Origin: Dimorphilus gyrociliatus
Taxonomy: Eukaryota > Animalia > Annelida
DNA length: 64,000 nucleotides
Assembly (NCBI GenBank): GCA_904063045.1
Contig: CAJFCJ010000023.1
Location: forward strand, 372,001 to 436,000
Reading direction: 5' to 3'
Positions 5,864-58,547 of the stretch are shown piece after piece (within the stretch, counting starts at the first letter, position 1; each line of letters starts with the position of its first letter). The notes under the pieces are model-generated. The model had not been told where the DNA came from. It did not search any database and worked only from the letters and a program-made list of their open reading frames with translations. The position numbers were made by a program, and so were the translations under genes.

Positions 5864-7772
5864 TTGAAGGGATGCTGGTTGACGAGGACGATTCGTCATT
5901 GTTGAACTTTACTCCTATTCGACGTAAAGCAAAACTTGTTTTCTTGTTTTTTATTTTTACCCTTTTTATGGATTTTTTATTATTGTTCTATTTCTTGTTT
6001 AAAACGCATTCAACGTATTGTCGTTAAAGAAAAATCTCTGTGATCTATGGGCTAAGACGTTTATCCCACCTTCTCTTCCTTTTTAATAATAATAAACATG
6101 TATAGATGCAATAGATTACTACCTTTTACTTTTGATTATTATTATATTGCTATTATTATTATTATTAACACTATCGACTCGATACCTTCTCCCTATCCTC
6201 GTCAGACTCCCCACCTTCTTTTTACTTCTTCCCTTTCTCATTGCCAGACTTAACCCTAATAAAAACCATTTACGAGCAAGGTCTTTCTATTTAGGTCAAT
6301 GATAAATGCAACTAACCCTGGCTAAAATTTCGATTACAAACAAATGTAAAAAGTCGTTGTAAAGTTTAAGAGGAGGACTATATATGTATTTTTTTACCGC
6401 TTGGTCACACACTACGACGTTGATGGAAGCAGGGATCTATGAAGAATTTCTACTGGAAATAATGCGTAGACAGTTGTATATTATCAGCACTTTTATATTT
6501 CAATACATAATGTTGGAATTCCTGTTAGAAGTGTGAATAGTTTTATTCATTTCATAGGGATAGACTGGCATATAAAAGTAATAGAGAAGATTATTATTTA
6601 AAAGGATTTTCTTCCGTTAATTGTTTTTAATTTATTCTTGACAGGTTCGACATTTTATAAATAAATTAGGAAAATTGTAAAATCTATGCCGCTATCTTGT
6701 ATATTTTTTTCTCTTTCTCTTTTACTCTCTTTCTCTCTTTCTTTCCATTGAGCCTTTTCATTTAATTTAATCCTTAAAAAAACTAGGTGTGTTTTTTCAC
6801 GAGTGTCGGCGCTTTTGTAGTGGTTTACCTTCGTGGGAACCAAATTTCCCCCACACTTTCTTCTTAGTACATTTTTACGGAGTACCTGGTCATACAGACT
6901 GATATATGCCATTCCTAATAATATTTAGCCTTAATATGTGCGTATGCTTTCTCTCATAGTTGATTTAATTAAACAATCTCCATTTTTTTCTTTTCATTCT
7001 TAACAATCATAACGTCTCTCCGAGTGTCATAATAGGTGGAGCTGTTGAAGACTTTTAATTGTAGAATAAGCCAAAGGGCCGGATGAGGACAGAAAGATAG
7101 TATTAATAGATAGAATAAGGGAGAAAAGAGAGAGAGAGAAAGAGAAAGAGAAAGAGAGAGAGAGGAGCAAAAGCAAGAATTGCTAAACGAGGTTAAGAGT
7201 AATTGAGGGAAGGGAAAGTGAGAGAAAGGTGGAAAAGATCTTTTTGAATAAACAAGTAATTTGTTTTAAGAGGTTTTCTCTTTATTTTGATATAAAAAAA
7301 ATATTAAATCTAGACTTTGCTGTAAGATAAATAGACATATTCTATTAATTTTTTACTTCTTTAACTGAACTGAGAGTTGTTGAGTTTATATACGCTATCC
7401 TAATCGTTCATATTTGGATGATGATTATACAGAGTATGTGTGCTCTCTATAAAGATTATATCCACGCTGCACATGTAACACACTCATCATGTACAAACAC
7501 ACATATATACGTATACACACACAAACATATATAGATATACATTATACACAGTATACATATATATTTATAAATAGATATGCTGTTGTAAATCCTTTGGCAT
7601 ATACGATACAGATATACTGGATATATTAAATTTAGTCCTGTATATGTGGCTTTATAATATTACAAAAAAAATATATCATTAGTTATAAATCTCTATTTTT
7701 TTATTTTACTCTTATGGCGTCTATTTGAAGCGTTTAACTTTGAACGTTACTCTTTGATTACTGGTTTTTATA

Positions 7773-8525
7773 TTAGAATTCGAATATAGGGTTAGAATGG
7801 CCTTGAAAATCAATTGTGGCGTGGTAGTTTACCAGGGTAGACTTTTTCCCTCTCTTCTTAAATTTCAAGTAACAAATTAATTGCATAGATAGAACAAAAA
7901 GGGTTTTAGTAATAAGAATCGGAACGAACAAAGTCAAATATATTGATTTTGCTCTACCAGGACATGTTGAACAATTAAATGAAACGTAAAGAAACAAGGT
8001 GAAATTAATTAGACAAAAAGCGATGACGTGATTTAAGTATGAATAGGCAGGCCTAACCTTATACGTAATTACCATCTGTACTGTACCAATAAGGACAATT
8101 ATTGATGTTATAATAACCAAATAAGATCTTTGATAGAATTTTGTCCAGTCGCATACTTTAATCGAACTGGATTGATTCCAACCGAGTAGAGGAGAAAAAC
8201 CTAGTCCAAGAGAGAAATTCCACAATAAAATAAATATGGTTATTTTCTGCAAGTTAGTCAATTGGAAAATGAGCGTGAATCCTTCGGCTAAGATGGCTGT
8301 CACTAAAAATGATTCGGCCAGGAAGCAGTTGGTAAACGAATAGCCGAATAGAGTCTGACAGGTCTTGACAATAGCCCAAGTTCCGGTGAGTAGATGGACG
8401 ATGGCGGATGAAGTGAGTAAAAAGTTTGGTGGATAGAACGATAGTACAAATAATAAAAAGCTTAAAAGACCAATAATACAAGCGAAAATGAGACAAACAA
8501 TAACTGCTGCATTAGGTATGTTCAT
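7773..8525 (-). CDS. Intronless compact 7-transmembrane protein (~250 aa), divergent rhodopsin-class GPCR-like
   Basis: Open frame 7773..8540, first ATG at 8525. Seven hydrophobic segments, a Cys at the top of TM3 (FTNCFL), and a TM4/ECL2 motif FSPLLGWN...VCDW typical of class A GPCRs. No DRY or NPxxY motif. Confidence 0.65.
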   Translation of the reverse strand: MNIPNAAVIVCLIFACIIGLLSFLLFVLSFYPPNFLLTSSAIVHLLTGTWAIVKTCQTLFGYSFTNCFLAESFLVTAILAEGFTLIFQLTNLQKITIFILLWNFSLGLGFSPLLGWNQSSSIKVCDWTKFYQRSYLVIITSIIVLIGTVQMVITYKVRPAYSYLNHVIAFCLINFTLFLYVSFNCSTCPGRAKSIYLTLFVPILITKTLFVLSMQLICYLKFKKRGKKSTLVNYHATIDFQGHSNPIFEF

Positions 8526-49900: not shown

Positions 49901-52770
49901 ACGCTACAAATTCTCTTTCCCTCCTTACAGGCGAAAAGTTTCAATTCTTTCTTATTTTCCTCGAAATTACTTTGATTGCATTTTTCAAAATGATTATTAA
50001 GAAAGAACTTGAACAAACAAAGAAAGAAGACAGCAAGGAGAAAAAGTTAATGTCATTCGTTTCATTCCTTTTTTTTTTCACTTTAAAAGAAAAAAGACGA
50101 AGAAAAGGAAGAATATACACAGGGATGACAAAGGATAAAGTACACCAATTTTATCCTATAAAAGTCTATAATCGTTAATTAATTATAAAGCCGTCTGATG
50201 CACGTAGATATGTCCGTCGAAAGCAGCCGTAAATAGTATTTCCTTACTGCAGTAAAGGTGTGTTAAGTAAGTAATGGCGATAGAATTCATTTGACGGTAA
50301 AACTCTCATTAATTGCATTATAGGAGCATGAAAATATATACTGTATACATATATATGTACATATACATGTATATATTAATATATATCTATATACGGTATA
50401 TATAATTTACTTAGGGTGTGTATTTCGTAATTCCCTATATGAGAATAGAGTTTTGGCAAACTTCCAGAAAAACATTGTACCTTATTGTATCTGCCTTAGC
50501 TAATGATATGCTATTTTCTAATATTATCCTAACCCCCAGCAATTTCTTTTTTTTTTTTTGAGAGAATTCTACAAGATTTTAAGTACGGAAATGTTTCTTC
50601 TAGAAAAAAGTCACTCTAAATTAAATAGAGAGTATTGTAACATCAATGTGGACAGGCAGATTGGGGGGGGGGGAGAGAGAGGGAATAAACTAAGGAAATG
50701 AAACAATATATATATATATATAAACTGCTATATAAATAGCCTACGTTTTTAATCTTATCAAGAAAAGATATGAGTCATAAGGAAAACAGAAATATTTTCT
50801 GATTATTCATTCTCTGTCGTAACTTGCGTTATTGGTTTCATAAATAAATAAAGCTTGTTTTATCTTAATTTATTTTTTGTTTTACTTTACAGTCCTAATA
50901 CACACTCCACTACTACTGAACAGATGATGTTGAATGATTGAAAAAAAACGCGCGTCACGCATTATTGATTACTTTTGCCCCTAAATTATTCTCGGCTGCT
51001 TTAATGAGACATGTTTTTCACCCAGGTATATTTTTCGAAGGGAGCTGTGCATTTCCATGGAAACGCCGTGGTAAAGATGAAACGGAAATACCTGTTCCCT
51101 TATTTCCCTGATACATACAGCCTGCGAGTATGCTTAATATGCGTATACAACACATTTATACGTAGAAAGGTGTTATGGAACAAAGATATATATATATATA
51201 TATATATTTATAAACAGTGTACAATATATATATTATGTATAAACTATATATACATATATATATATATATGTATATGTTGTATATAATTCGTTAATAAATT
51301 GACTTAAGTACTACTATCGTCCTTTGATTTTGTGACAAAAGTATCTATACAAACAGTAGAGTCGCTATTGAGAGAGTAAAAAGTGTATAAAATACAGTTG
51401 CATGACGTCAGTTAAAGAGTTACTGTTGTCGTTTTTGTACTGATTGACCTGGTTTTTGAAAATGTTCAATTAAGTAGAAAAAAAATGGCATATAAAAAAA
51501 GAAAGAAAGAGTAAAGAAAAATATAACAAAAAAAAAACAAGGGTCTTGATTATTATGGACTTTGTATAATTAATTAACCGACGTGTGCCGTGCCCGCGTT
51601 ACGTTTCTTTCTTTCAGTCATTCATTCAGTCAGTTAGTCGAATACGGTTGACGGATTGTTAATCGGGTTTGTGAACACTGTATATGTTTTCCTACTTTTC
51701 ATTTCTCCCTCAATAGAATAAATACAAAAGTAGAAGAATGAACAGATAAACTCTCTGCTAATATTTTATTGCATATTTTTTTTCTTTTCGCTTATTTACT
51801 ACTAAAAAAAATTCAACAAATTCTATTATCTTCTTTTATGCTTATTTCTTTTTGTAGACAAAAAGAAGAGAAACAAAAATAAACAAAAACAATTTGAGAG
51901 AGAGAGATACAGAGACTGAATAAGTGTTTTTCGTACCAAAAATTCACACAACACACAAATAAAAGTATTATTATTAAACTAAATTGAATTGTAAGGAAAA
52001 GGGAAATTATCACTTCGCATTTCATTTATATTATCATTAATAAATTGTCAAAAATATCTCTTAAAATGTTAAAAATATCAAAAGAAAATAAAAATCCTCT
52101 TCTTATAAATTATGAAGTATTTACGTCCCTTTTATTTATTATTATTTCTTATAATTCATATATTTGAATACTATACTAGGTCTTAATACGATTTAGGATT
52201 TTCGTTTAATATTATAAACAGTAACTCTTTAGTTGATGTTCCTTTTAAAAATTTTAAAAGGAAACACTTACCAAGTGTTTTGTTAGCTCTGCAGAAATTA
52301 TTCACACACAGTTTTTGTTTTTCTTAACTAAAATTAATTGCCCATTTTGAGAAATTGAGAGAAGTTAGGAAGGCGGAGATGCGTGTAACAGTTACATATA
52401 CACTTACGTACGAATACATATTGGTCTATAAATGTATATATGTATAGCATTATATCTTACTTGGAAGATACAGAGAGAGAGCAAAAAAAAGAGAGAGAGA
52501 TAGAATATAAGGATATATAAATATATGAATAGATAAATAGAGAGAGAGAGAGAGACTGACCGGTTAATAAGGGAAGTATGAGAATACAGTAATATCTTGA
52601 ATTTTCTTTCCCTTCTTACTATTCTTCTTTCTCTGATTATCTTCATCTTCGTCTTCTTTCCATTGACGTTTTTCTCCTTCTTCTATTCCTTCTCTTCTGA
52701 TTCCTTCTCCTCCTTCTCCTCCTCCTCTTCCTTCCACTTCTTCTCTTTCTTCTTCTTCAACTTACTTATC

Positions 52771-55700
52771 TCAAATGTTTGCTACCAACTCTGATAGCAT
52801 TTGAGGATAATTTTGTTCAATACTCAACGACGGTAGGGTTATACTTTTATCCCCTTCCCTTAAAGTTATTAATTGAAGAGCTGCAGAAGCATTTTTATTA
52901 TCCAAGTTCAGTTGAGGAAATAGTTTATCAGTAACAGCATCCAATAAATATGGATCTTCTCCCGTAACGAGTGTCTTATTAGAGCAGGAGAGAACTTTTC
53001 TTGGCCTAAAGTGTTAAATAGATTATTAATTAATGGTTTTTACAGGCAATGAATAAATATTATAGATCTAAACTTATTTTCTCTTCTTCTTTTATGGCAT
53101 TTTTTTCCCTTTCTATTTTTATATAAATCATTTTTTTTCTACTTAAAAACATTGTTAGGTTCTATCGAGTTTTGACTTTTTTATTTGCCTCAAAGGACAT
53201 TTCTAATTTCGTCTATCACGTGATTGAACGTAGGCTTGCTTCAATATGTTTTATAGTCTGACAGGCTGTTATAGAAAAATTATTGGCTTATCAGACAACA
53301 GTAGATAAGCCGATGGGTCAAAAATTGTACGTACACTTGAATAGCAGGAGGTATTAGATAAGCGATGTGATTTTCTACGAAGATGAAGCTAAATTATCAT
53401 CTTTGAATAAAAGAGATATTGTTGAGATTAAGAGAAAAAATATAGAAAAATCTTAAGAGAGAGAGAGAAAGAAAGACAGAAAACATAGAAGAAGAAGAAA
53501 AAACAGCATTATATCTGTTCATATAAAGTAGCATAATGATGATCGATTCAAAAAGACACGAGCCACAAAATAAACATTTCGTGTACATAGGTACACGTAC
53601 AAATAAACATGAACGTTTGACTACAAGGGGCGAACATGTGACGCTCTTAAAATAAATCATCGATTAGAGTAAGCATTATACGATAGATTTATTACGATTG
53701 TAAATTAGGGCCACTAAAAATTGAATGGAAGGTTTTGTTTACTATTTTTTTGTATATTTTGTTCGAAATCCTATTAATTGATTGATGACCTAAAAAGGGA
53801 CGCCATACAGTTGCCATAAAAAGCATTGCATAACTGTCCTGAACAACGTTTAATAGAGCGAAAAATCTATTGATCACTGTTCAGTTGTCTTAAAAAAAAA
53901 AGAATTGTAGATTGTCCTACTTTTCCTTATTCTACATAAGGAATATGATAATTGTGAATTGAATTATTGATAGTTAAAGCGCTAACTGACCTTCCTCTTC
54001 TGGCGGGGGCGACAACAACATTTTGCCCTTTTTCCACGCTTTCGAAGAGTTTATTCAGCAAATCAGGATTGGCTACCGAAATCTTCCTCTCACCTTTAGG
54101 TGCCATTTTGGACGGAGGTGTTACTGGGCGAACTTCTTCGTCGCTGTCTTTGGTTCCAAGAGGCGGAAGAATTGGATAGTTGACTGCTGGAGAAACATGA
54201 GAGGGCCTATTGGGTTGTTGCCAGAAGGATTGTGGGAATGCCCTTAGTCTCATTGGTAAAGGTTTCGGTTCTAGGTAAAAAAAGAGTAAGGTATAATTGT
54301 TAGCTTTAAAAAAATGTAATTGAATATTCAATATTTCTATAGAGAGAACGAGAGAAGAACGAAAAAAGAATTAAATAATAAAGAGGGAAAGAAGTAGGCC
54401 AAGTTAAGTTTTTACATATAGATTATTAATACTATTATTTCTCTTATGTATAAAGTATTTCTAGGCTTTTACTAATACTTCTACAGATAAACAAAGAGCT
54501 TCCACGCGATATACCTATTTTCTCTATGTATATAGATGTTTTTCTATAGTATTAAAATACAAATACAAAATTATCAGCAAGTTCAATATTTAATAAATAG
54601 TTTAGACTATAGTTTTTTGTAACCTACTTAAGGATACTCTTCCCTTAAAGCTTCATTAACCTTAGATTATTGAATTCAAGGTAATCTATTCTTTACGACA
54701 TTATCACGATTCGATAGTTTTCCCAAGTTGATTCGTGAGTTAGATAACCTAATTATTTAAAAAACAGACCCATTCGAAGTTTGTAAAATGGGCAGGCTTA
54801 TCTTTTAGCCTATAGATTTAACTACAGTCGATAAATGATTCGGATAGATTACAGAACTTATATTTTTATAAGATTTTTTTGGGTGGATTAATAGCGGTCA
54901 TGGTTACCGGAAAACATGGTCAAACACCTAAGTCGTCAATTGATTATAGGCTTAATCCGTTTAGAAATAGTGCAAACTGTTTACTTTAATACACGTTTAG
55001 CGTGCCTTGTAGATCATTCTTAAATATATCATCATGCTAGGCCGTTTTCGTCAATTAAGCCGATTGAAGCCTACTTCCGATTCTATTGCACTTTCAATGA
55101 ATTTTTATTATAAACGTTTTTCACTAAGAACAAAATAGAAAAGAGACATAAACTGGTAAGAATATCCAACAAATATATAAATAGTTAAACAATTTCGTTG
55201 CACTGAGTTATGAATATTTTAAAGGATTCTTGTTATTATAATCTATAATCATTTTGATCAAAAAAATTCCTTCCTTTTTTCTGTCATTTAAAGAATTTCT
55301 TATCAATTTAACTTCATCTTTAATAAAATAATCTATAAATCTCTTCTGTTTGCGTGAATTTTATTATTGTTTGAGGAATATTTTTACTATTTATGCTATC
55401 ATTATTATGTAATAATTACATTTTAAAGTACCATTAACCCAAATGTTTACCGTCCTCCTCTCTTTCTCATCCTCCGCCCTTCTCACTCACTCTCTCTCTC
55501 TCTCTTTAGCTTGCTATTGTATTCAACAACACACTGTTCTCTCTTTCATTTTCATGAATAAATCAATATAGATGGAATGAGAAAGAAATTTTTCTAAAAT
55601 TTTCAACCGCTACCTAACATGCAGATTAATTATTCTATTATCCTAAAGAAATCTTAATCTCTCTCTCATTCTCTCATTCTCTCTCTTAATAAAATGCTGA

Positions 55701-56143
55701 AAAGAGGGAACAGCACAGATCCGCTCTCTAACTTATATTGCTTTTATATGTACGAATACATTAATACAAGAACTTAATGCAAAACTATTACCTTTATGCC
55801 TTGGTTTACACAACTTTGGCGGTGCAGGTTGTTTCCGAAGACCTGGTGCAGGTTGCTGACTGGCGTGAAATCTCATCAACTTGTTACGTCTCACTGTTAT
55901 AGGCTTCTTCTCTTGAAACTCGTGGGCGTGATGCTCAAACCCTGGTTTTCTTACATATGTAGGTCCACTTGCTGTAGACGAATTAGGAGATCCTAAACTT
56001 TCGTAATCGTGATCCTGCAGTGGAAGAGGGCTAAAGGTAGAAGAACTATCCGAATTATTATTTATTCTTGGAGAATCCAATTCTTCTTCATCGCTTGTCG
56101 TAACCAAAGGCCCTGAGTTTGTTCTTTTCGATGAGGACGACAT
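52771..56143 (-). CDS. ~288 aa largely disordered protein with a YAP/FAM181-type TEAD-binding omega-loop motif; no WW domain
   Basis: Exons 56143-55792, 54270-53991 and 53005-52771 join in frame (867 nt). It contains PLPMRLRAFPQSFWQQP, compared with YAP PMRLRKLPDSFFKPP. The last exon (RPRKVLSC...LPSLSIEQNYPQMLSELVANI*) is not in the ORF track. Confidence 0.75.
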
Positions 56144-57461
56144 GTCGATTCTATTCAGCTAAAAAATTTTGTAGACTATAGAAGGCGACTATAACATCGT
56201 CGTTACTCCACTCTTTCTATCACTCTGTACAAACACCTGAGCGTAAATTTTCTGTTGCTATGGCTACCGGACAAACGTTTCACCTTGATAATCGATTCGA
56301 CGTTTATATCTTATTCTTTTTCCAGCTTTAAATCGTCTTTTTTAACGATATCAGAGCAAGCGACAGATTCTAGAAGTAAATGCTAATCAAGTATTGACCT
56401 GTGCATGCGCCTGACAAGTTTATTCATGTTTACCTGCTTTAGCAAAGCAACGATTGGTTGTTAAGAACGCCGTGGCGCTTTGTCGGCGTTGCTAAGAGGA
56501 TTGGTGTTATTTACCAGTTATTTCTTTTTGGCGCCAATTTTGAACAGTAATTTTTTTAAAAGTCATTCAACGTAAGGTAAATCGACCAATAGAAAACGAA
56601 CTTTCAGCGCCACCATTTTTGGCTCGCTATTTCTATTTTACTTTTGATCAGCTAATTAACATCATTGAGTAATTGATTATCGTTTTACAATGAGTAAAAA
56701 GCCATTCTTAACTGCTTCACCCTAGTTTTCAAAGCGTTTCCAAACCGATTCATTCGCCATCTACTGTATAAAAAATGTTGAATTTTCAAGAAAGAGGAGC
56801 AAGGCGAATGAAAGATTTTTTCAACGTGCATAACGTAATACTTGAAAAAATATCTAGAAGTTTCAAATATCAATTAGCATACATAGGTATTAATTTCATA
56901 TACGCAATATATTGTATAATAAATATATAGTTGATTGTATATACTAATAACAATAAACTTTGCAGTAGTCGTTGTTGAATAAACGAACTTTTACAAACGT
57001 GGGAAACGTCGGTGTATTTTTTTTTTATATAACTGCATACAGTAATGCAGTAGAGATATACTATATTTTATAAAGTATATACAGTATACATATACTAATA
57101 TATATACAAGTAAATAAATACTTTATTCATATATAAAATTTCATTTATTCGCACTAACTCGATACTAATGTATGTTTGTTTATATAGTAAAAATGCTCAG
57201 TAATCTAAGATAGGTTTGAAGATATTAAAAAAATTATGATAAAAATATATGCAATTAGCAGAAATCAATTAAAAGGAAATGCATAGCCAAAAGGCAAAAA
57301 GAGTAGAGCTAAAACAAAATTGTATGCATACAGGAAGCTAAGTCAGTTAGATAGTTTTAATAGTCTTTTTTCTCCTTTATAGATAAATTAATCTTTTTAA
57401 GATAAAAGGGAAAATTGATTGCAATTTAAAGAAAAGGCAAAATCAGAATATGAATTGAGCA

Positions 57462-58547
57462 TTATTGATACAAGTTAATTAATTTTATCCAATTGTCCCT
57501 TTTATAATCATTGTCACATTGTAATAAGACGGGTCTTAACGCTTTCCTTTTAATAACAACAACATGATTTTGCTTTGAACTAATCGATTCGTCGTTTACG
57601 TATTCCAGACAAACAGCTTCGCTCTCCTCTAAATTAATGACCTTCAGTGGTTTTTTATAATCGGTTTGTAAACTTTTTCCCGATGAATATAGACGAATTT
57701 CCTTAGGATCTTGAAACAACACAGCCTTCCTAACTCTCCAATTTCTTCTCCTATTACTCTTTATCCTGATTATGTCGATTAACAAGCTTTCCCTGTTACG
57801 GTCTAGATTGTCCTCGCTTTCATCACCAGAACTTGTAGAATCTGAAGGTTCTGTGCTACTCTCCAGTAAGGCAATCATCGATATTCTTCTTATACTGGAG
57901 ACGGCAGAAAATGCATACATTACAAAGTCTCTATCCTGGAAGTCCTTAGCTTTTTGCTGAGGCACAATTTGTTGAAAGTAGCCACCGGAAGTTAATTGTT
58001 GGCAGATATCAAAACCTTTTTGACGACTAGGAGCAAAATCCCAATTGAGTAGCCAATCGATTGCTTCCTTACCGCTAAAGCATCGGATATTATTTCTGTT
58101 TTTCAGTTGTAATCCGGCTGTTGGATCTTCCATTGAAACTAAAATTTCACTCAAGTTATAACCTAAATCTACTAAATTGTTGGCGTCGAAGGAACTCCTA
58201 GTTAATTCTCTGATAGCAGCGCCAATCAAGCTTAACCAGTAATTCTTCTCCGAATCAGATGCCGCTTGGAAGATTACAGATCTCTTCTTTTTTGATAGGA
58301 TGACTTTGAAAGTATTCTCCCTTTTCGTCTCGTTCTGATTGACATTTGAAACGCTACAATTGCTTAATATAATTCTAGAGCATAAATGCTTGCATCTTTT
58401 TCTATAATATTCTAGGCAATCCTCCTTGAGTATCGTCCATCTTGTTTTCCACCTTCCGGTTCGCTCATTCTTTTGATTTAAATAGCCCTGCTTAAGTACT
58501 ATAGAGGAAGACATGTCGATCGCGTTGTCCTCATTCTTAACTTGCAT
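57462..58547 (-). CDS. PLEK: Pleckstrin-like protein (PH-DEP-PH), single exon, 361 aa
   Basis: N-terminal PH (LKQGYLNQKN...WKTRWTILKEDCLEYY...EKNYWLSLI), central DEP (CFSGKEAIDWLL...FQDRDFVMYAF) and C-terminal PH (WRVRKAVL...RDNWIKLI). Confidence 0.85.
   Translation of the reverse strand: MQVKNEDNAIDMSSSIVLKQGYLNQKNERTGRWKTRWTILKEDCLEYYRKRCKHLCSRIILSNCSVSNVNQNETKRENTFKVILSKKKRSVIFQAASDSEKNYWLSLIGAAIRELTRSSFDANNLVDLGYNLSEILVSMEDPTAGLQLKNRNNIRCFSGKEAIDWLLNWDFAPSRQKGFDICQQLTSGGYFQQIVPQQKAKDFQDRDFVMYAFSAVSSIRRISMIALLESSTEPSDSTSSGDESEDNLDRNRESLLIDIIRIKSNRRRNWRVRKAVLFQDPKEIRLYSSGKSLQTDYKKPLKVINLEESEAVCLEYVNDESISSKQNHVVVIKRKALRPVLLQCDNDYKRDNWIKLINLYQ

Follow-up and report, generated by a model that had tools for sequence, protein, structure and literature searches.

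A candidate TEAD/Scalloped cofactor of Dimorphilus gyrociliatus with a YAP-type omega loop placed ahead of an LxxLF helix

The output of TEAD is set by the cofactor that occupies its surface, and the known occupants are YAP/TAZ, VGLL1-4, FAM181A/B and, by prediction, PERCC1. The energetic hot spots of YAP are M86, R87, R89, L91, S94, F95 and F96 (Mesrouze et al., PMC7784741); some fish YAPs have F for L91, and FAM181A has W for F96 (PMC7784741). In vertebrates, FAM181A and FAM181B interact with TEAD (Bokhovchuk et al. 2020, as cited in PMC9710580). The Leu-Phe pair of interface 2 and the serine of interface 3 were placed at residues 68-69 and 94 in YAP, at 168-169 and 230 in FAM181B, and at 177-178 and 216 in PERCC1 (supplement, PMC9710580). 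Here we describe a gene on the minus strand of a 64,000-nucleotide stretch of the annelid Dimorphilus gyrociliatus (assembly GCA_904063045.1, contig CAJFCJ010000023.1, positions 372,001 to 436,000; hereafter the window, to which all coordinates refer), whose protein carries an omega loop of the YAP type followed by an LxxLF helix, and we compare it with these systems.

The omega loop and the family that carries it

The gene runs from 56143 to 52771 and has three coding exons with GT..AG introns; spliced translation gave a coding sequence of 867 nucleotides and 288 residues. By exact look-up, the protein was identical letter for letter to DgyrCDS13063 of D. gyrociliatus (CAD5124800.1, A0A7I8W9I9), an unnamed gene model. 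Exon 2 opens with PLPMRLRAFPQSFWQQP or, with the preceding residue, (E)PKPLPMRLRAFPQSFWQQP. When this exon was compared with Pfam, its residues 4-19 matched PF15238 ('TEADIR3, Omega loop, TEAD interacting region 3'), a model 16 positions long, with a score of 27.1 bits (cut-off 26). The same match was found in 31/31 relatives of the full-length alignment (best E 3.5e-8) and in 10 further relatives, including Trichoplax (31.5 bits) and a jellyfish. When the full-length profile of the 31 relatives was searched against all PDB chains, the loop was aligned to crystallised TEAD-bound peptides. The best match was FAM181A (6l9f_C, QVPMRKRQLPASFWEEP; E 3.3e-4); YAP1 was matched at E 4.1e-4 (9fza_B), together with other YAP1 chains and Yorkie (4re1_C), and Vestigial (6y20_C) weakly, at E 0.24.

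The equivalents of the YAP hot spots were all kept in DgyrCDS13063 (M124, R125, R127, F129, P130, S132, F133 and W134). F129 stands at the position of YAP L91, where most relatives have L. Among 89 aligned sequences R127, P130, S132 and F133 were invariant, and M124 and W134 were at least 90% conserved. Judged from its sequence, the omega loop of DgyrCDS13063 is real, as it passes a curated Pfam model and keeps every YAP hot-spot position, and binding to TEAD through it is predicted with good confidence. The original prediction, made from the DNA letters of this region, had claimed a YAP-type omega loop at the start of exon 2 and the lack of a WW domain. Both claims held, every string that it quoted was recovered on the minus strand at the place given for it, and the motif, whose conservation among homologues it had left to be checked, proved near-invariant in the 89 sequences.

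The search of the C-terminal exon profile against 1.84 billion representatives retrieved 129 proteins with E<1e-3, of which 70 had E<1e-10; here and below, counts and absences in the family searches hold among the matches listed. Many of the matches were full-length proteins of 250-500 residues with the domain at the extreme C-terminus. The full-length profile retrieved 117 proteins. A word-index search returned four exon-sized open reading frames (ORFs) for exon 2, a count limited by the length window, and 20 for the C-terminal exon. The annelid members are from Owenia, Lamellibrachia, Paralvinella and Dimorphilus, and on the lophotrochozoan side they are joined by many molluscs, Lingula, nemerteans, a bryozoan and a rotifer. 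Arthropod members come from chelicerates, a myriapod and crustaceans, including barnacles and a copepod, and from hemimetabolous or palaeopteran insects (Periplaneta, Blattella, Zootermopsis, Timema, Schistocerca, Ephemera and Ischnura). Further members were found in Saccoglossus, echinoderms, Branchiostoma, corals, a scyphozoan jellyfish and Trichoplax. Of the named matches of the C-terminal and full-length profile searches, none came from a vertebrate, a holometabolous insect or a nematode.

All members named in their sources are 'uncharacterized' or 'hypothetical', or bear evidently wrong automatic names. Four mollusc orthologues (P0033, P0192, P0043 and P0187) are misnamed 'serine/threonine-protein kinase phg2-like', 'mucin-2-like', 'CARMIL C-terminal domain-containing' and 'DDB_G0271670', and in Pfam scans of P0033, P0043 and P0187 the omega loop alone was found. 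A literature search found no paper describing this family and none for TEADIR3. The family is pan-metazoan and previously unstudied, its loop being already tagged by the short Pfam model. The Pfam scan found no WW domain in DgyrCDS13063 or in 41 relatives and no Tondu motif (Vg_Tdu) in any scanned member; TEADIR3 was the sole Pfam match in the 41 members, including long ones. The LATS site HxRxxS was not found in DgyrCDS13063 and was present in 8/97 aligned members. Proteins of this family lack WW domains, are disordered over most of their length and probably reside in the nucleus.

The Dimorphilus gene is represented in RNA libraries, and both its introns were confirmed by RNA. Contigs from RNA run X6 and from X7 skipped exactly 54271-55791 (joint 54270/55792), and contigs from RNA run X1 and from X7 skipped 53005/6-53990 (joint 53004-5/53990-1). 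None of the contigs was classed as human. In X7, a public run of which the library type is not on record and the contig depth is a rough guide only, depth was 200-375 over the exons and 0-21 over the introns. Since an X7 contig covers 53990-54270 unbroken, the loop and the helix share one exon in D. gyrociliatus, with no intron between them. On contig L002 the orthologue has loop, helix and C-terminus encoded by three separate exons. Relative to it, the compact Dimorphilus gene is one intron short, the one that parted loop from helix having been lost.

Repeats of parts of the omega-loop exon were seen in two relatives. On a 2.9-Mb contig of a related species (L003:5523-6098), the 5' half of the exon and its upstream splice region are present five times with a period of 111 nucleotides. 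Each copy carries PVPMRLRALPQSFWKQPNNP; the first four run into a stop and the last alone continues into the rest of the exon. This could be a real minisatellite with alternative acceptors or an assembly artefact. A contig of 3.7x coverage from another relative (L004:101-1059) carries at least eight copies of the 3' half of the exon (QPNIPNNVSPANLLPSLPPLGSKDTNEDI) in shifting frames; the helix and C-terminal exons follow downstream, at 6496-7798.

The order of loop and helix, and what the helix may contact

In DgyrCDS13063 the loop serine is residue 132 and the Leu-Phe pair is at residues 192-193, 60 residues past the serine, within the stretch NPDLLNKLFESVE that begins 48 residues past the end of the loop. 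The loop serine came before Leu-Phe in 96 of the 97 aligned members, with the Phe 57-213 residues downstream (median 72), and no LxxLF was found upstream of the loop in the conserved columns of the family alignment. The reversed order is therefore a family trait and not a quirk of one gene, because 96 of the 97 members share it. These findings clearly show that loop-before-helix is the opposite of the order in YAP, FAM181B and PERCC1, and that both this order and the architecture, the latter common to more than 100 homologues, have been retained in lineages ranging from Placozoa and Cnidaria to cephalochordates. The original prediction had proposed that the two TEAD interface elements are present in reversed order; the order itself was borne out, and the likeness of the helix to that of YAP reached the level of the motif only.

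Within the helix block, L188, L189, L192 and F193 were at least 90% conserved, and AlphaFold2, run with the alignment of 89 sequences, predicted helices at residues 186-192 and 194-197 with a predicted local distance difference test (pLDDT) score of about 74. The family pattern L-F/x-K-L-F-D/E-x-V lines up with L65-E-A-L68-F69-N-A-V72 of YAP, the YAP sequence having been checked in PDB chains. On this ground the helix may tentatively be taken as a second TEAD contact, at interface 2, and a disordered linker of at least 45 residues could reach from one TEAD surface to the other whichever way the chain runs.

Several observations weigh against the account of this protein as a TEAD cofactor or against the helix as its second contact. 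For the loop, the whole-protein PF15238 score was 25.1 bits, just below the cut-off of 26, with a model of only 16 positions, and the AlphaFold2 pLDDT was only 62-64. For the helix, the block profile returned nothing from the PDB at E<=10 and thus no YAP, TAZ or Vgll chain. The position-specific scoring matrix (PSSM) of the helix gave the YAP segment LEALFNAV 3.8 bits, less than the 6.5 bits of an unrelated piece of the YAP loop, LRKLPDSF, and its match to YAP is motif-level, with a chance of about 1e-3 per segment scored. Loop and helix are 57 to 213 residues apart, a variable spacing that contrasts with the short linker of constant length in YAP. Moreover, the helix and the basic block that follows it might possibly correspond to the N-terminal conserved helix of PERCC1/FAM181.

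The distance from the helix to the RGRP column was near-constant, at 10-35 residues with a median of 16. As the helix keeps a fixed distance from RGRP and a variable one from the loop, it fits a C-terminal effector module at least as well. A plausible account, although one short of probable, is then that the loop binds TEAD and the LxxLF helix makes no contact with it, serving instead as an acidic amphipathic helix for recruitment or activation. Such a helix would cooperate with the basic patch and the C-terminal module; it could, for example, bind a co-activator or co-repressor, or fold back onto the module. Two unrelated short motifs would then stand in 'reversed order' by coincidence. The composition D-LL-x-K-LF-D/E-x-V-E-E is typical of hydrophobic-acidic activation motifs. 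The near-constant spacing from RGRP, the PDB profile search without YAP, TAZ, Yki or Vgll helices, and the PSSM that rates the YAP helix no better than an unrelated YAP segment all favor this account. It has to be set against the alignment of L-x-x-L-F and D/E-x-V with YAP L65, L68, F69, N70 and V72, the co-occurrence of helix and loop in nearly all members, the reach of the disordered linker, which could span both TEAD surfaces, and the LxxLF of FAM181B, which also lies far (54 residues) from its loop (PMC7784741). Assignment of the helix to the C-terminal module as its effector or recruitment helix is accordingly possible, and the helix as second TEAD contact is kept as a tentative reading beside it.

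The functionally closest described proteins are FAM181A/B and the predicted cofactor PERCC1, which are WW-less, disordered and carry an omega loop; the order of elements in the present family differs from that of YAP, FAM181B and PERCC1. FAM181A/B share with the family the lack of WW domains, the largely disordered chain, the omega loop and the PF15238 match, the FAM181A loop also ends in SFW, and in FAM181B the LxxLF is likewise far from the loop. FAM181B differs in that its Leu-Phe lies before serine 230, whereas that of the family lies after the serine, and the helix/hairpin/helix C-terminus, the RGRPKK patch, LPPL and the N-terminal SSTASGPxYVRPPGF motif of the family are undescribed in FAM181. 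PERCC1 is similar in being small (~275 residues) and WW-less, with an omega loop ending in SFW, conserved N- and C-terminal regions and a similar invertebrate phyletic pattern, and TEAD binding is predicted in PERCC1 (PMC9710580) as it is here; its interface-2 Leu-Phe, in contrast, comes before the interface-3 serine.

These likenesses raise the question of whether the family consists of invertebrate orthologues of FAM181 or PERCC1 already reported by Sanchez-Pulido et al. 2022 (PMC9710580), where invertebrate PERCC1/FAM181 were described in molluscs, annelids, echinoderms, chelicerates and amphioxus. The overlap in phyletic spread is striking, both being absent from Drosophila and C. elegans; PF15238 was formerly the FAM181 family, the best PDB match is FAM181A, which also has SFW, and PERCC1 is likewise of about 275 residues with a conserved C-terminal region. 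We nevertheless find this identity unlikely. The Leu-Phe pair precedes the serine in PERCC1, FAM181B and YAP and follows it in all but one of the aligned members here. None of the 117 matches of the full-length profile was named FAM181 or PERCC1 and none was from a vertebrate; no recognisable vertebrate protein was among the named matches of the C-terminal profile, and no protein named PERCC1 was in either search. The family was set apart from FAM181 and PERCC1 by published positions, descriptions and match names.

More improbable still is that the loop-like motif has another partner or a structural role away from TEAD, which would leave the family outside the Hippo/TEAD system. The 16-residue Pfam model with scores near its cut-off (21-31 bits), the uncharacterised state of every member, and the extra invariant residues around the motif (QQPN and LPPL), which YAP lacks, speak for such a role. 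Against it, every YAP position of energetic importance is retained, R89 and S94 with their TEAD-specific polar contacts among them (PMC7784741), and the known carriers of the loop (YAP, TAZ, FAM181A/B and Vg/VGLL2) are all TEAD binders. Finally, a chance motif or false gene model was ruled out by the RNA-confirmed splicing and the deep conservation, and a truncated Yorkie/YAP model missing its WW exons by the agreement of the ATG region and the stop with the family termini, by RNA contigs that span both untranslated regions, and by the finding of WW in no scanned member.

Other conserved blocks and features of the locus

The blocks of the family follow one another in a constant order. The N-terminus, M..GKR.P..PL..SDEE, with which M..KR..GPL..SDEE in exon 1 of DgyrCDS13063 agrees, is followed by DYE..SP.SST.SGP.YVR.PGF.HHA.E, a KKKK stretch and the omega loop (EPLPMRLRALPQSFWQQPN). 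Then come LPPL, about 18 residues past the loop, RPVTPPE, the ER...V.NTDLLFKLF(D/E).VE helix and RGRPKK. The C-terminal blocks are G.DP.LV...TE.LFP.LSLE and GDK.V.LPSL.VEQNYSQMLSELV..(I/L)-COOH; in DgyrCDS13063 the protein closes on ...GEDPYLLDAVTDKLFPQLNL...LPSLSIEQNYPQMLSELVANI and the stop. The coordinates of the features are collected in Table 1.

Table 1. Features of the DgyrCDS13063 gene and their positions in the window
Feature	Position	Strand	Residues	Remarks
Coding exon 1	55792..56143	-	1-117 + one base	ATG at 56143; donor AAG/gtaata
Coding exon 2	53991..54270	-	118-211	omega loop, LPPL, RPVTPP stretch, LxxLF helix, first half of RRGRPRK
Coding exon 3	52771..53005	-	211-288	TGA stop 52771-52773; 20 ORF-level homologues
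5' untranslated region, minimum extent	56144..56356	-		X6 RNA contig covers 56136-56356; X7 contig reaches 56246
3' untranslated region, minimum extent	52200..52770	-		X7 contig joins 52766-53004 to 52200-52694; contains GA/CT microsatellites
N-terminal linear motif	55919..56014	-	44-75	DHDYESLGSPNSSTASGPTYVRKPGFEHHAHE; family consensus DYE..SP.SST.SGP.YVR.PGF.HHA.E
Omega loop (TEAD interface-3 motif)	54212..54259	-	122-137	LPMRLRAFPQSFWQQP; Pfam PF15238
LPPL motif	54158..54169	-	152-155	about 18 residues after the loop
LxxLF helix block	54029..54091	-	178-198	ERKISVANPDLLNKLFESVEK; candidate TEAD interface-2 helix or effector-recruiting helix
Basic RRGRPRK patch	53991..54001 + 52996-53005	-	208-214	split by intron 2; family consensus RGRPKK
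C-terminal module	52774..52962	-	226-288	GEDPYL..VT.KLFPQL ... GDKS.TLPSLS.EQNY.QMLSELV..I-COOH; always ends the protein

In the N-terminal SSTASGPxYVRPPGF motif, P53, P61 and G68 were at least 90% conserved. The motif is unstructured in AlphaFold2, and no helix was predicted by AlphaFold2 within residues 1-120; FAM181 proteins have a conserved helical region near the N-terminus (Nt-F, residues 59-106 of FAM181B), and PERCC1 has one termed Nt-P. In LPPL, residues L152, P153 and P154 were invariant and L155 was at least 90% conserved among the 89 sequences, so that this motif is as invariant as the loop. Its surroundings had a pLDDT of about 73 with a helical turn at residues 145-148, and no counterpart of LPPL is described in YAP, FAM181 or PERCC1. 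The basic RRGRPRK patch resembles an AT-hook or a nuclear localisation signal, and either contact with the DNA minor groove or a role in nuclear localisation is possible. Pfam AT_hook (PF02178, cut-off 17.4) gave sub-threshold scores of 13.9 and 14.7 bits in two relatives and no match in DgyrCDS13063, and the RGRP motif is missing from the gastropod and rotifer members.

AlphaFold2 modelled the C-terminal module of about 65 residues as one helix, then a long beta hairpin and a second helix. In the hairpin and the final helix, pLDDT was 82-91 when the full-length protein was modelled and 74-84 when the domain was taken by itself. The original prediction could put no name to the C-terminal motif, and none was found. 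No Pfam family matched the module at E<=1 in DgyrCDS13063 or its relatives. In a VIA-align fold search against 48,161 PDB representatives, the whole model had no match at Z>=2 and the isolated domain reached at best Z 2.3; the best Foldseek match in the PDB was at E 1.7, and matches by shape in the ESM Atlas had template modelling (TM) scores of <=0.2. Feature matches in the ESM Atlas to bacterial hypothetical clusters (0.91-0.92) were taken as noise.

The conserved hydrophobic extreme C-terminus of YAP/TAZ is a PDZ-binding motif. In the present family every protein ends exactly three residues past ELV, the last residue being I, L, F or M. This constant stop suggests a role for the free C-terminus, perhaps that of a PDZ-type ligand like the one in YAP/TAZ.

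Upstream of the gene, at 57462-58547 on the minus strand, lies a single-exon ORF of 361 residues with a pleckstrin-like arrangement of PH, DEP and PH domains (Pfam PH 8.5e-25, DEP 9.1e-9). GA/CT microsatellites and CT-rich runs are present in the 3' untranslated region and intron 2 (52470-52565, 52695-52765 and 53451-53513). Inside intron 2, at 53668-53974, an X7 contig of depth 2.7 skips 305 bases, a gap with plus-strand GT..AG ends; the contig could represent a minor antisense or unrelated transcript, or noise.

Proposed mode of action and its meaning for TEAD biology

Taken together, the evidence makes DgyrCDS13063 a likely candidate for a Hippo-independent TEAD/Scalloped cofactor anchored via interface 3. 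The omega loop (residues 122-137) would dock in the interface-3 pocket of the YAP-binding domain of TEAD/Scalloped. Because the same interface-3 site would be used, occupancy by the family protein would be mutually exclusive with Yorkie/YAP on a given TEAD, and the two would compete. Output would come from LPPL, the amphipathic DLLxKLF helix, the RGRPKK patch and the C-terminal module with its free hydrophobic C-terminus, acting via recruitment of partners or contact with DNA; the part of each of these blocks and the sign of the transcriptional effect are what we infer, as are TEAD binding, competition with Yorkie and nuclear location.

With YAP/TAZ/Yorkie, the family has in common the omega-loop hot-spot residues, an LxxLF amphipathic helix and a conserved hydrophobic extreme C-terminus. 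The WW domains and HxRxxS LATS sites are theirs, whereas DgyrCDS13063 is without both; the YAP helix stands before the loop, with 25 residues from F69 to S94, whereas the family helix stands 57-213 residues after it; and the C-terminal module is different. Because it has neither a WW domain nor an HxRxxS LATS site, the protein would act outside the control of the Hippo kinases, like FAM181 and VGLL proteins. Vestigial and VGLL2-3 resemble the family as WW-less TEAD cofactors with an omega-like loop, their helix lying on interface 2. Vestigial differs in having a Tondu strand and a VxxHF helix before the loop, with no Tondu in the scanned family members.

In its widest form, the proposal would be that of a fourth family of omega-loop TEAD cofactors, which would extend from Placozoa and Cnidaria to cephalochordates, with apparent losses in vertebrates, Holometabola and nematodes. 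It would have a permuted TEAD grip of loop first and helix second, an unnamed C-terminal effector and a DNA-touching patch, and would act in most animals as a Hippo-independent rival or partner of Yorkie. In all its parts together this is rather doubtful. The permuted order would offer a natural experiment on whether the YAP interface elements work independently of chain topology, a question relevant to peptide and stapled-helix inhibitors of TEAD. The gene is apparently absent from flies, nematodes and vertebrates, the three systems in which the Hippo pathway was worked out, and, if the proposal is true, it was lost on the vertebrate stem. It was found in corals, molluscs, annelids, crustaceans, cockroaches, sea urchins and amphioxus, and an extra conserved occupant of TEAD would, if true, alter how Hippo/TEAD read-outs are interpreted in non-model animals.

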